A stretch of 63,960 nucleotides of DNA, the filler included, from Reticulomyxa filosa (Eukaryota; Protista; Foraminifera), in NCBI GenBank assembly GCA_000512085.1. It is 21 parts of 21 records of this genome, joined end to end, with 100 filler letters (N's around TTAATTAATTAA, not from the genome) between each part and the next. Parts side by side here need not be neighbours in the genome. Positions count along the whole stretch, not along the records: positions 17,984 to 24,871 come from ASPP01024819.1; 20 more parts are not named here. One strand, 5' to 3'. Positions 18,696 through 24,871 of the stretch are shown one piece after another. The notes beneath the pieces are model-generated. The model was not told the DNA's origin. It worked only from the letters and a program-made list of their open reading frames with translations, and did not search any database. The stretch's first letter is position 1, and each line of letters opens with the position of its first letter. The position numbers and the translations under genes are program-made.

Positions 18696-19528
18696 CTAAA
18701 AAAGAGTAGCCAAAATGTTATTCATTTGATCAGTAGATATTGTCTGTAGTTGTTTTTTGGTTTTTTCAGTCAAATCTTTAGGTATAATTACTTTATCTCC
18801 TTCTACCTTCCATTGTACATTGAATTGTTGAAGCAAAGGCTTTAGCTCTCCTTGACCCTACATATTTTAATTTTAAATTAGGTACAAATACACATTAATT
18901 AAGCTATTTATCATTGTTTTTTCTTTTTTTGGTGACATTAACTATCTGTAATAAATCACATAAAAATGCGGCGGGTATCGAGTGATAGGTCCAAGACACG
19001 GCAAGACAAATATATTTTCGAATGGATTGCTCAAAGTTCTTGCATTCTTGAAATGTGGATTTGGTTACTTCATATTCTTTCCAAAATCCAGAAAAGTCAC
19101 CTTCTTCTAAAAACCTTCCCATTTTCAACACTTTTTCCAATTCTTTGTTGCCTTGTTTCTATTGTCCGTTTGATTTTCATTGATTTATTTTTTGTGAATT
19201 TTCGCTTTTTCAAACGTGTACAAAAATAAATAAACAAAAATGAAATAATGCTTCAAACCATTTGTGGCATCGATATAAGATATACCAATAAGGCAAAATC
19301 AGAATTTGGCAAATTAGTTAAAGATGTGATGAGGATTTTGACAATTATTTCCATTTTAGAAGTGTTTGGAAACAATCAGTACATTTTCATAAGATAAAGA
19401 TTTGATGGAAAATCGTACTCGCCTTTTGTCGTTTGCTTGCTGACATGATCTTCCAAAGGACGGAGAGCTTCTTTGGTTGCTTCGAAGAGATTTTGTTCGA
19501 TGTGATATTCAATATCTTCACTTGCCAT
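18696..19528 (-). CDS. EIF3K: Eukaryotic translation initiation factor 3 subunit K (3 exons; one in-frame TGA)
   Basis: LEDHVSKQTTKGEYDFPSNLYLMKMY*LFP...ILITSLTNLPNSDFALLVYLI | LEEGDFSGFWKE...FEQSIRKYICLAVSWTYHSI | ...WKVEGDKVII: eIF3k motifs, with intact splice sites. Confidence 0.85.
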
Positions 19529-20141
19529 TGCTACAATAAAGAAAAGGAAAAAGGGAAATGGATAAAGAGTATTTTGTGATGAAAATTTCAAGTTTTAGTT
19601 GTTTCTTTCTGTTAAAACGAAATATTTCAAGTTTTTAAGATATGCATAACATTTGTGCTACAAACTCCAAAAGGTATATTTGGTTTTACTGAGTTTTTCA
19701 TTGTACAAGAAATTGGATAATGACTTAATTTTTCTTGGTGCTTTATTTATTTTTAAAAAGATCTAATTTAGTTTTAGCCGATATTTGTGTTTTTTTGTAA
19801 TGTTTTAATAGTTGAAATAGTCCAAGTTTATCTCTTTTTTTTTAAAAAAAAAATAATGTTATTTCAAGCACAATTAATTAAAGCAAAGAGGAAAATAAAA
19901 AATGAAAAAGAAAAGGAGACCATGATCAGTGTTAACGTCGGATTGAAGACGAGGAAGATGTCCACTAATGGGATCATTAACATTAGAATTGGTATCATTA
20001 TTATTGTTATTATTCTTAAAAAGTAACTTTCATTATGTTTGATTCCATTAAATTGGCTTGAATTACTTTAGAAAATTTCAACTTCACCAAAACAAATAAT
20101 TTTATTAACAAAAATCATAAACAAGCCAAACACAAAAAAAA

Positions 20142-23100
20142 TCAAAGTTTCCCACCACGTTGTTCTATAAGCAACTTTTGTTGCGACGTCAAACCATTTG
20201 TATCATTCCAAATACTCTCCTCCATTGACAGACCATAACTCTGAACACCTGCTTGCCAAATGCATTTCGTCAAATTAGGTCCACTTACACCAACTACTTT
20301 ATTCTCAGTATTCCATAAGCGAATTGTTCTATCTTCTGAGCATGAAACTATTTTTGAACCATCTGGTGATAATTTCATTGCATTAATTTTGCCGATATGC
20401 CCTTGGAATATTTGTATTTGTCGTCCTGAAGACACATCCCAGGTTCGGATAGTCCTATCATCGGAGTAAGAGATAACTTTAGAACAATCCGGCGTAAATT
20501 CCGCTTTTGATATAAATTCCGAATGACCTTCAAACACTTGAAGTTGTTTTCCAGACAAAACATTCCATAGTCGAATTGTTTTATCCCATGAATAGGACAG
20601 TATTTTGTTACTCTCTGATGTAAATTGCACTCCCATTACCCAATGTGAATGTCCTTTCAATAATAGGATTTGCTTTCCAGATGACATCTCCCAAAATCGA
20701 ATCGTGTTATCTTTGGCACAGGTTACAATTGTAGAATTATCTTGTGAAAATTGCATATCCGTTATATCTTCTTCATGTCCAGCAAATAGTTGGAGCTGCT
20801 GGCCACTAAATACATCGCATAAGCGAAGAGTTTTATCTGTAGACCAGTATGCAATTTTGGAATCATCTGGTGAAAATCGCGCTCCTGACATCCAAGAGGG
20901 TCGTCCATCAAATATATGAAGCTGTCTTCCTGACAATGTGTCCCATATTCGAACGTTTTATCATAGGAATATGATAAAACTTTTGATCCATCTGACGAAA
21001 ATTCGGCTCCGTTTACGATTTCGTGATGCCCTCTTAACACAATGAGTTGCTCTCCAGATGACACACTCCATATTCGAAGTGTTTGATCTGCAGAATAGGA
21101 CAAAACATTGGAACCATCTGGTGAAAATGTTACCCCACGCACAAAAAGATCATGTCCTTCAAACACTCGAATTTGCCTTCCTGTTCGTACATCCCATAAT
21201 CGAATCGTTTTATCAGATGAACATGACACAACTTTAGAGCCATCTGGTGAAAAGTACACTCCAGTGATACTAGATAGATGCCCTTCTGTTAGCTGAATTT
21301 TCCTTTCTACGGCAATATCCCATATTCGAATAGTTCCATCGCCCGAACATGACAAAATCTTAGAAACATTTGGAAAAAATTTCACTTCGCACACGATATT
21401 TGAATGTCCTTCTAATACTTGAAGCTGTTTTCCAGATGATAAATCCCATATTCGAATTGTTCGATCAGCTGAGCCAGACACAATTTTCAAATTGTCGAGT
21501 GAAAATTGTGCTGTAGTTACACCATGTGAATGTCCCTCCAGTATTTGAAGTTGTCTTCCGGACAACACGTCCCATAACCGAATTGTTTTATCTTCTGAAA
21601 ATGACAAGATTTTAGCTTCATCTGATATTAGTCGAATTCCATTTATGAAATGTTGATGTCCTTCAAATATCTGAATTTGTTGATATGAAGACATATCCCA
21701 CATTCGAATAGTTCGGTCCCATGAGTAGGACAGAAGTTGTAACCCATTGGATAAGAACTGTATTCCATTCACACCTAGTGTATGCCCTTCCAATATTTGA
21801 AGTTGTTTTCCAGACAACACATCCCATATTCGAATAGTCGTATCTCTTGAACATGACACAACTTTAGAGCCATCTGGTGAAAATTGCAATGCGGTAACCA
21901 TATTTAAATGCTTATCCAATAATTGAAGCTGTTTTCCAGAAGATACATCCCATATTCTGACAGTTTTGTCCTCTGAACATGACGCAATTTTAGAGCCATC
22001 TGGTGAAAATTGTATCGCCTTTACAATTTCGGAATGACCAGTCAACAATTGTATTTGTTGACCTGATGATACATCCCATATTCGAACAGTATCATCCCAT
22101 GAACATGACCCAATTTTAGAACCATCAGGAGAAAATTGCACTGAGGTGACAGAATTTGTGTGTCCACTCAATAAATGAATCTGTTTTCCTGACAATATAT
22201 CCCATATTCCGATGGTTGCATCGGCTGACCATGAAACGATTTTTGTTTCGTCTGGTGAAAATTGAATTCCATTTACACGATCTGAATGCCCTTTAAAATA
22301 TGCATATTCTCCAAAGTAAATTCCATTCATTGATGCATTCGTAAAGTTAGTTTTATTTAAAAAAGCTTGATAAAAACGAACATTATCCAAATTAGCATTA
22401 CTAAAGTTAGTTCCTTCAAGGAATGCGCGATCTAAAATTGCGTGAGGGATTTTGATATTGTCCCAATTTCGACAATGCATATTCACGTTTGCCGAATTAA
22501 GTATGGTAATAGCATTTGCTGCTGCCATACTAACATTCTCATTATTTTTCGATGCTTCGATAATTCTAAATAACCTTGATTTTAAATTTACATATATTGG
22601 ATTGATGTCATGAATTCTTTCTGCAATAAACTGAATAATTCCCAATTCTTCATTTAATAATTTGTAATTGATAAACAAGTGTTGAACGTGCATTTCAAAT
22701 TGCTGTTGAAATTGTTGATTATTAACATCAACGACATTAGGTTTCCATGAAATGATGTCAAATATTATCTTTTGTGCCGCATAATATTCTTGACAAGATT
22801 TATGTAAAAATTGATATTTATTTTTACCAATTCTTCTCAATACATATTTTGCAACACTGTCACTGTTGAAATATTTTTCCCAAATATCTTGTGTTTTTGC
22901 AATTGAAGATTGAACTTTTTGATTGATTGTTTTTATTTCTATTTTTTCATCTACAATACTTTTAGCTTCATCTTCTCCTATCATCGGATCTAATTTACTC
23001 CAAATTTCATGATTGTTGTCAGATTGAAATTCTGGTTCAATTACAACTTGAGTTCCTTGAATAAACATATCAAATCCCAAATCAAGACAATACTGTTTAA

Positions 23101-24871
23101 GTGTTGATTTTATTTTATTGGCACTTATTTGAATTCGTAATTCTAATAATTTTGATATTATATTTTGAATGTGAATATCAATCCAATGATCATTAAATAC
23201 TTCATATACTTGTGCTTTTGCGACATTTGCACCTGCACCATATTGTTGCGCTAATGATGGCAATATAGTTAAAATAAGTTGAAGAAGAAACGGTTCTTCT
23301 ACCATTTTTTGTAAATTTGGATAACTGTTCAATGTTTCTTCATATCTTTTTGGTGTCCAATCATTATTATCACTCTTTTTTTATGTTTTGATTTCATTTT
23401 TGCAAATTTTTCAATGTAGCTATACATTTGTTGTTTTGTAAATGGCCATAAATGCGTCATTTCTGTTATGTTTTGACTTTGATTTGAACCAATTAAAACT
23501 TGTTTAATATCTTCATCAGTTAGGACATGACTTCGACAGCTTACAATGAATTTTGCATTCCATTGCCCTAGATTAAATCGGTCATAAAAATATCTTTGAT
23601 TTTGATTATTTTTATTATATTTATCAAATATTTCATCAAATCCATCTAAGATAAAGATAAAAGAAATATTTTCACGAATGACATCAATGATATCTTTATG
23701 AATATGTTTAAGTTGTAAAGCTTGAGAAATGATTTGTTGTTCATGTAATGGATGATAACATTTTGGTAAAGAAATATAAATAGGAATAGATGTAATAAAA
23801 TGATTATGATATGATTCCCATAAATTTTCTTCTAAATAACGACAAAATAAACTTTTTCCTGATCCAGATTTTCCTTGTAATAAAATAACTTGTTTTTTAA
23901 TATTAGAATTAAATTCATTTTTATTTTCTTGTTCTTCTGTTAATAAATGATTTATATGTTGATAACAATCATATGTATTATTAATAATTTGATTATCGAT
24001 ATATGGATAGTGATTTGCCTGTAAAGGAATATATGTTTCAAGTGCTTGTAATATAGTATTATCTTCTTGTATTTCTTGGTTCATAGATTTTTTAAGTAAT
24101 GATATAATATCAATAATACATGCAGGGTTACCTTCACCAATAATATACTTTTTAAAAAAATCAAATAAAATGACATAAATAGCTTGTCCTTTCATTTTTA
24201 AAGGTTTAAAATTACAAAGTTGATCGTAAACAAATTTAATTAATTTGAATGATATATTATTTATATCTTCTTTTTCATTTATATTACTTAATTGTGAAGG
24301 TTTTAATATTTTAATTTCTGAATGTGATTTGTAACGATTAGAAATTTTTTTTTATTTCTTTTTCATCTATCCATTCACAAATAATATCATTAATTTTTGT
24401 TAATGTTTGATAACTTGCTTGTTTAAATAATTCTTCTTTTTCTTCTTCTAATTTCCATAATCTAATATGTTCATAAAATAAATGGCTTAATTTTGGATTT
24501 TCTATTATAGTATATCCTTCTAATGTTGTATAATTTTTTAATGTTGCTTGCATTTCAATATATACATCATATTTAGAAACATATAATTTAATATTATGAA
24601 AACGATGATGTGTTTTTGATTGTTTATTAAAAAAATCTTTATCTTCTGATACTATTAAATTAAATTTTTCTGCTTTCTTTATTACTGCTACTACTGTTTG
24701 TAATTTAATTGAATTATCACATAAAATAGTAAATCTTCCTATGTCAAATATTTCATTATAATTACCATTATAATCTGATTTTATTTTTTCTAATAATCTT
24801 TCATTTCCTTTTAAATTAGGTGGTTTTACAACTGTTATTTCATATTTTTGTAATTCTATTATTAAATTCTT
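20142..24871 (-). CDS. NLR-like STAND protein copy A: RelA/SpoT-like domain - NACHT - pentapeptide - 16x WD40 (5'-truncated; 3 apparent frameshifts)
   Basis: Joins ORFs 24338-24871, 23329-24195, 20762-23332 and 20142-20936. Walker A GKSGSGKS, Walker B FILDGFDE, FLHKSCQEYYAA, pentapeptides (AFLEG TNFSN ANLDN), 16 repeats of ~42 aa, and a C-terminal GLTSQQKLLIEQRGG tail. Confidence 0.9.

Follow-up and report, generated by a model that had tools for sequence, protein, structure and literature searches.

Does the foraminifer Reticulomyxa filosa possess an enzyme of the RelA/SpoT homolog (RSH) type, to which other domains is it joined, and is it maintained by selection? These questions are raised by the end of one contig piece (17984-24871, from ASPP01024819.1) within the window, by which we mean the whole 63,960-nucleotide stretch of joined R. 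filosa parts analysed here. An earlier note had translated the minus strand of 24338-24871 by hand and had seen RelA/SpoT-like motifs there; translation of this interval reproduces its reading, KNLIIELQKYEITVVKPPNLKGNERLLEKIKSDYNGNYNEIFDIGRFTILCDN...QSKTHHRFHNIKLYVSKYDVYIEMQATLKNY, exactly, and gives 177 stop-free codons (24341-24871), with a stop only at 24338-24340. The frame is still open at 24871, the contig edge, where the N-terminal helix of the domain is cut off. Because the frame runs past the contig end, the mechanical list of open reading frames (ORFs) holds a single short entry for the interval, of 71 amino acids (24338-24553, from an internal ATG), and the domain had indeed been mostly missed by the ORF track, as the note remarked. 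We conclude that this domain is a member of the RSH synthetase fold, grouping with Tas1-like toxin domains. We further consider it likely that 24341-24871 represents nearly all of a Tas1-like RSH domain, which would be the enzymatic effector head of an R. filosa STAND/NLR-like protein.

The assignment to the RSH fold draws on sequence profiles and on a structural model. The Pfam RelA_SpoT profile (PF04607) matches residues 21-109 with an E-value of 2.8e-5 (24.8 bits), and a likewise sub-threshold match is found in 11 of 19 paralogs; the RSH domain has been overlooked by public annotation because its score lies below threshold. An AlphaFold2 model made from a 35-sequence alignment (predicted local distance difference test score, pLDDT, 84.7; predicted template modelling score, pTM, 0.76) has its strands and helices in the order seen in small alarmone synthetases (SAS). 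Compared with the PDB using Foldseek, it finds Tas1 (6OX6) first (E 7.3e-7), then SAS1/RelQ, RelP, Rel and CapRel, and all 55 of the matches at E<=1e-3 are RSH synthetases. With VIA-align, Z scores over about 150 residues were 12.3 for RelQ, 12.0 for YwaC and 11.4 for Tas1, and 7-8 for other nucleotidyltransferases. The modelled domain is thus predicted to have the synthetase fold, a five-stranded mixed sheet with flanking helices, and the resemblance to RelA/SpoT proposed in the note extends beyond chance by profile, by Foldseek (E about 1e-6) and by VIA (Z 11-12). Searches of the RSH piece against NCBIfam and with PADLOC models gave no match, and an ESM Atlas feature search returned unnamed bacterial clusters and one RelA_SpoT cluster only.

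Within the RSH synthetases, sequence searches of the PDB point to Tas1. It was the best match of the single protein from the window (E 0.013) and the sole match of a profile made from R. filosa sequences only (E 0.009), and a profile extended by metagenomic relatives matched Tas1 along the entire domain with E 2.2e-19, YwaC being the runner-up at 1.2e-8. By match scores, as distinct from phylogeny, the domain appears nearer to Tas1 than to other RSH groups. The domain and its motifs are placed as follows:

24341..24871, minus strand: RSH synthetase-fold domain, Tas1-like, 177 codons (translation, Pfam, model, Foldseek, VIA)
24782..24826, minus strand: KPPNLKGNERLLEKI, basic motif (K21, R25, K29), aligning with the RSH ATP-phosphate-binding motif and with IKSRERAMQKI of Tas1
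24719..24748, minus strand: FDIGRFTILC, D-x-x-R strand motif (D43, R46), the equivalent of DIaGvRII in small alarmone synthetases
24584..24622, minus strand: QSKTHHRFHNIKL, the GYRSLH-motif equivalent, in which R90 is common to distant relatives
24539..24562, minus strand: YIEMQATL, E-x-Q catalytic strand (E106, Q108), the equivalent of EIQIRT
24461..24484, minus strand: HLFYEHIR, H-x-x-Y-x-x-x-R helix (H130, Y133, R137), also found as GHKYYEDWR in Tas1 and EHKIYYK in SAS enzymes

In the 35-sequence alignment, the residues common to the foraminiferal family and its distant relatives are K21, R25, K29, Y34, G36, D43, R46, R90, E106, Q108, H130, Y133 and R137. All 13 are kept in the copy from the window, and all but Y34 and G36 are listed as near-invariant across the 35 sequences; among 15 distant relatives, K21, R25 and K29 do not vary at all. 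The basic ATP-binding motif, DxxGxR, the GYRS-like motif, ExQ and the HxxY helix align with those of Tas1 and YwaC, and on this alignment the catalytic acidic residues (D, E) and the basic ATP-binding residues of RSH synthetases appear to be present. For RelSeq, Hogg and colleagues reportedly found in 2004 two residues to be essential for synthetase activity, namely the second motif's D and the E within ExQ.

The RSH domain is not free-standing. It is the N-terminal module of a gene of about 1,575 codons, with its stop codon at 20142-20144, which reads in the order RSH domain, helical linker, NACHT, helical region, pentapeptide repeats and about 16 WD40 repeats, and which is truncated at the contig edge and interrupted by three single-base frame breaks; the four pieces that the breaks separate were each searched on their own. 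Beyond the RSH domain, its features are:

24345..24353, minus strand: frame break 1, an A9 run with a one-base shift, where paralogs read EKEIKKIANRYK... in one frame
23890-24344, minus strand: conserved helical linker before NACHT
23404..23889, minus strand: NACHT NTPase domain (Pfam PF05729, E 2.4e-9, 37.7 bits against a cut-off of 26.7)
23851-23874, minus strand: Walker A, GKSGSGKS, within NACHT
23632-23658, minus strand: Walker B, IFILDGFDE, within NACHT
23376..23382, minus strand: frame break 2, an A7 run
22307..22489, minus strand: pentapeptide repeats, placed after the helical region that accompanies NACHT and before the WD40 array (Pfam PF00805, E 1.1e-7)
20142..22300, minus strand: about 16 WD40 repeats with a 42-residue period (Pfam WD40, E 1e-109 and 8e-44)
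20953..20954, minus strand: frame break 3, in a WD40 repeat (DKT / VRIWD), a single-base offset with no long homopolymer

With a NACHT domain above cut-off and both Walker A and Walker B motifs, the predicted protein is classed by sequence among the NLR-like STAND NTPases. In a tblastn comparison with the paralog ETO36350.1 (1734 amino acids) the gene is collinear, matching residues 161-332, 333-614 and 614-1465 and then the WD tail, and collinearity holds for P0041. In the window copy the tripartite effector-NOD-repeat order is seen across three frame breaks, but the single-protein models of paralogs P0036, P0039 and P0041 hold it in one polypeptide. An RSH-like domain joined to NACHT (and further to pentapeptide and WD40 repeats), in the same domain order, recurs in the longer paralogs P0036, P0038, P0039 and P0041, in keeping with the note's suggestion that this was not a one-off fusion.

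The family to which the gene belongs is large, as the note had also supposed. A word-based protein search returned 35 proteins, all of them R. filosa entries named 'hypothetical protein RFI_xxxxx' with 54-83% identity, and a precomputed RelA_SpoT match was present in none of the 35. An exhaustive profile search gave 62 representatives at 50% clustering, about 45 of them from R. filosa; the strong matches that were looked up include ETO36350.1, ETO33612.1, ETO08206.1 and ETO21379.1, all from R. filosa. There are at least about 50 paralogous fragments in this species, named in public sources as 'hypothetical', 'NACHT domain-containing' or 'NB-ARC domain-containing', with the RSH part unflagged. 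Three contigs (L001, L002 and that of the window) end within the RSH domain, from which it follows that the assembly collapses at this repeat and that copy number is underestimated. The first family profile (A2, 133 positions) was without the E-x-Q strand because many public models end at VPKHD, at contig ends; A3 and A4 draw on longer sequences of the family.

Are the motifs themselves under constraint? On different contigs, as the note had claimed for two copies, FDIGRFTILC, THHRFHNIKL and Y[IV]EMQATL are unchanged in paralogs P0001/L003, P0002/L004, P0036, P0039 and others, which have 67-83% overall identity. Among 20 R. filosa sequences the mean entropy of the 31 motif columns is 0.38 bits, against 1.07 bits for the other 144 (Mann-Whitney p 4e-8), so that motifs are more conserved than their flanks, and the contrast persists within the domain core. 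FDIGRFTILC is the most conserved 10-residue window of the family and YIEMQATL the most conserved 8-residue window, and QSKTHHRFHNIKL ranks 19 of 163 among windows of its length. In pairwise codon alignments with six paralog contigs, the Nei-Gojobori ratio of nonsynonymous to synonymous divergence (dN/dS) is 0.03-0.26 with dS of 0.5-1.4, and it is 0-0.08 in motif codons as against 0.1-0.34 elsewhere, values to be read in the light of short alignments, dS near saturation and extreme composition. Between the window copy and L003, motif codons alone give a dN of 0.0 and a dS of 0.46, and such synonymous divergence inside the motifs points to purifying selection rather than gene conversion. Overall, low motif entropy and low motif dN/dS support the note's proposal of purifying selection, which is strong and keeps the putative catalytic motifs intact in dozens of paralogs.

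The module also occurs outside this species' assembly. Two environmental homologs were found, P0051 (an ENA metagenome contig) and P0059 (a whole-genome shotgun metagenome record). P0051 is 46% identical overall, yet FDIGRFTILC, THHRFHNI and YIEMQATLK are letter-identical, and its contig has a GC content of 48% versus 31% for the gene in the window; the same module in a different base composition indicates that it is not confined to the R. filosa assembly. On the P0051 contig (L007:60-1475) the order is a 4-Cys domain, the RSH domain and the pre-NACHT linker. In P0059 (242 amino acids), FEMSQF replaces FDIGRF and the upstream basic motif is gone, for which either catalytic degeneration or a faulty gene call may be responsible. 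Among more distant relatives, P0080 and P0088 have RelA_SpoT above threshold together with TPR repeats, and others occupy the C-terminus, or a position close to it, in giant proteins with eCIS_core or Phage_Mu_F domains, a placement typical of toxin cargo. The closest relatives outside the foraminifera are of this toxin-cargo-like kind, which fits the affinity to Tas1.

Paralogs carry two modules upstream of the RSH domain (P0022:1-215, alignment A5), a region which in the window would fall off the contig, past 24871. One of them, made of three helices, is CUE/UBA-like, with VIA Z scores of about 6 to SMARCAD1 CUE1, NBR1 UBA and Vps9 CUE. The other, spanning residues 105-207, is confidently modelled (pLDDT above 90) as a beta-sandwich in which four cysteines are invariant (GINLQGYC...CLA...CPDC) and for which Foldseek and VIA found no clear counterpart in the PDB (E above 0.06, Z below 6).

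Several observations weigh against regarding the window copy as a Tas1-like effector head of a working receptor. The domain does not reach the PF04607 gathering score (27 bits); the link to Tas1 is weak when drawn from foraminiferal sequences alone (E about 0.01) and strong only via metagenomic intermediates; and the GYRS-like motif is HHRF in this family, unlike that of Tas1 (GYSG) or SAS enzymes. There are also three single-base frame breaks in 4.7 kb, of which break 3 lies outside any long homopolymer, genuine slippage mutations likewise favour homopolymers, and in ETO36350.1, a paralog counted as 'intact', a frame break has to be bridged by a pseudo-intron, so that an open frame from end to end was seen in no copy.

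The strongest competing explanation is that the copy is a dead pseudogene, in which the breaks would reflect real slippage and the motifs would be conserved only because the copy arose recently from a functional paralog. Birth-and-death evolution is usual in NLR-like families, and other paralog contigs have similar single-base breaks (L003 in a T run, 439-460; L008 near 3990, 3948-4030). Real introns were considered as a cause of the breaks and rejected, as consecutive tblastn segments meet directly and leave nothing between them. Against pseudogenisation, about 1,550 codons contain no in-frame stop, when 6.3% of random single-base changes would make one; dN/dS between the window copy and its paralogs (0.10-0.26) is like that of other copies; and its private changes, 4 in 77 conserved columns, are mid-range among paralogs. 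Moreover, two of the three breaks fall in homopolymers (A9 and A7) of a very AT-rich contig piece (GC 19-40%) in a draft assembly that is fragmented into 50,809 scaffolds, with an N50 of 3.6 kb (PMC13746701). The like breaks on L003 and L008 can be counted on this side too. L008 encodes ETO36350.1, and public gene models span the breaks as pseudo-introns; gene models of the RSH-NACHT family in this draft are unreliable. A search for sequencing runs yielded none of DNA or RNA from R. filosa, only two 'synthetic metagenome' runs in which 6% of the words occur; for 20100-24871 these gave exact 157-base pieces and 90%-identical paralog fragments, none across a break. Reference assemblies are their probable source, and they are not independent evidence. 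On balance we lean towards homopolymer errors of the draft assembly, or very recent events, rather than old pseudogenisation, and we regard a dead copy as the less probable alternative, though one to be taken seriously.

If the domain is an intact enzyme, its product might be directed elsewhere. R. filosa feeds on bacteria, and the RSH fold and catalytic residues are compatible with an active (p)ppGpp synthetase whose product is aimed at bacteria (prey, symbionts or pathogens) and not at the foraminifer itself, an idea put forward by Dyrka et al. for NLRs of fungi (PMC4986451). As the domain is intracellular and sits on a STAND receptor without a testable secretion signal, we consider this unlikely. 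It is slightly less likely still that the domain has lost catalysis and now has a structural or adaptor role in the receptor. The unusual GYRSLH equivalent (HHRFHN), the missing R of EIQIRT and the FEMSQF of the soil-metagenome homolog P0059 would fit such a loss, but the R of IRT is also missing in Tas1, the residues common to RSH synthetases and Tas1-like relatives are all kept in about 20 paralogs and in the 46%-identical environmental homolog, and the strongest conservation sits at those shared residues. That the RSH stretch comes from contaminating bacteria, or that AT-rich DNA resembles RelA/SpoT here by chance, is scarcely credible, for although the closest relatives outside the family are bacterial or metagenomic, the contig has an intron-containing eIF3K/CSN8-like gene and a GC content (about 20-30%) like that of other R. 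filosa contigs, dozens of paralogs lie in the same genome and the fold evidence (Foldseek, VIA) is strong; contamination was tested and rejected on base composition and the intron-containing neighbour.

This neighbour, downstream at 18699-19528 on the minus strand, is an intron-containing gene of the eIF3K/CSN8/PSMD8 family (PF10075, E 9.5e-8 on its middle exon, 18907-19140), which indicates an ordinary eukaryotic nuclear context. On paralog contig L001, an RSH-NACHT family member (start L001:7637) has, 1.8 kb upstream, a divergent HSP70 gene (3633-5873) whose several introns are short (about 70-90 nt) and T-rich, and a kelch-repeat gene and a WD40 gene are found on the same contig.

Returning to the proposed Tas1-like effector head, how does the R. 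filosa protein compare with known systems? The RelA_SpoT-NACHT-WD40 architecture is already known from fungi, where the N-terminal effector domains of NLRs include RelA_SpoT and RELA_SPOT-NACHT-WD40 occurs in Gaeumannomyces graminis (Dyrka et al. 2014, PMC4986451); a survey of Sordariales lists RelA_SpoT among the canonical N-terminal domains, with most RelA_SpoT NLRs (14, 82%) on T-NACHT (10.1101/2024.11.26.625400). The fungal and foraminiferal proteins share an RSH-type effector, a NACHT NTPase and WD40 repeats in the same order, both form expanded, variable families, and in both the function is a predicted one. They differ in that the R. filosa genes come from another supergroup (Rhizaria), the comparison being one of architecture; the R. 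filosa domain falls below the Pfam cut-off and is Tas1-like; its paralogs add the CUE/UBA-like and 4-Cys beta-sandwich modules ahead of it; and NACHT is separated from WD40 by pentapeptide repeats. A literature search, which did not cover the R. filosa genome paper, found no paper joining Reticulomyxa with NACHT or with RelA/SpoT, and the large expansion in a rhizarian, the affinity to Tas1 and the extra N-terminal modules of the paralogs appear to be new.

Tas1, a type VI effector and (p)ppApp synthetase of Pseudomonas aeruginosa, is the best match in both sequence and Foldseek comparisons. It shares the motifs LK-x-x-ER-x-x-x-KI-x-x-DY-x-GD...D-x-x-R-x-tI, E-x-Q and H-x-x-YE-x-x-R, and the missing R of EIQIRT, with the window domain. 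Identity is about 20%, however, Tas1 has GYSG in place of HHRF before strand 4, and it acts as an antibacterial toxin that is secreted and has an immunity protein, whereas the window domain sits in a receptor. The acceptor of Tas1 is an adenine nucleotide, GDP and GTP not being used (PMC8118318). RelQ/SAS1, RelP/SAS2 and YwaC include the folds with the highest VIA Z scores (12.3 and 12.0), and the catalytic D and E-x-Q align, but identity to the window domain is 14-17%, profile E-values are 1e-8 or weaker as against 2e-19 for Tas1, and these are stand-alone, tetrameric (p)ppGpp synthetases. The CapRel/toxSAS tRNA pyrophosphokinases (7ZTB) also match in fold (Foldseek E 3.5e-5, VIA Z 9.1), and CapRel, like the R. 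filosa protein, has an RSH toxin domain fused to a sensor, which in CapRel switches the RSH domain on during infection; CapRel is bacterial, and its sensor is a small pseudo-zinc-finger domain (pseudo-ZFD) rather than a STAND NTPase.

We propose the following mechanism, by analogy with STAND proteins of fungi and bacteria in which the head is an enzyme. A ligand bound by the WD40 propellers would release NACHT-driven oligomerisation, which would draw the RSH domains together and activate them by proximity. The RSH domain would then move pyrophosphate from ATP to a nucleotide 3'-OH, the acceptor being most likely an adenine nucleotide, as in Tas1, with (p)ppApp formed and ATP drained; alternatively, the acceptor might be the 3' end of tRNA, as in CapRel-type enzymes. 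Of these chemistries, the Tas1-like one seems the most likely for the window domain, judged by analogy. The outcome could be a local metabolic or translational shutdown, or the affected cytoplasm could die, in what would amount to an immune or non-self response. More tentatively, and as a conjecture that we think possible rather than probable, Foraminifera may have a large NLR-like family in which a Tas1-type (p)ppApp synthetase effector kills or silences local cytoplasm by ATP drain, in combination with CUE/UBA-like and 4-Cys modules.

To our knowledge, RelA_SpoT heads were previously known from fungal NLRs only, and we know of none that has been assayed. NLR-type receptors with enzymatic heads connect bacterial conflict systems with eukaryotic immunity, and the R. 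filosa family widens the taxonomic range of the RelA_SpoT-NACHT-WD40 architecture. It also offers a concrete biochemical prediction, namely that (p)ppApp synthesis or tRNA pyrophosphorylation may be an output of eukaryotic cell-autonomous defence; if the reading with a (p)ppApp synthetase is true, the domain would be the first eukaryotic death or immune effector that makes (p)ppApp.

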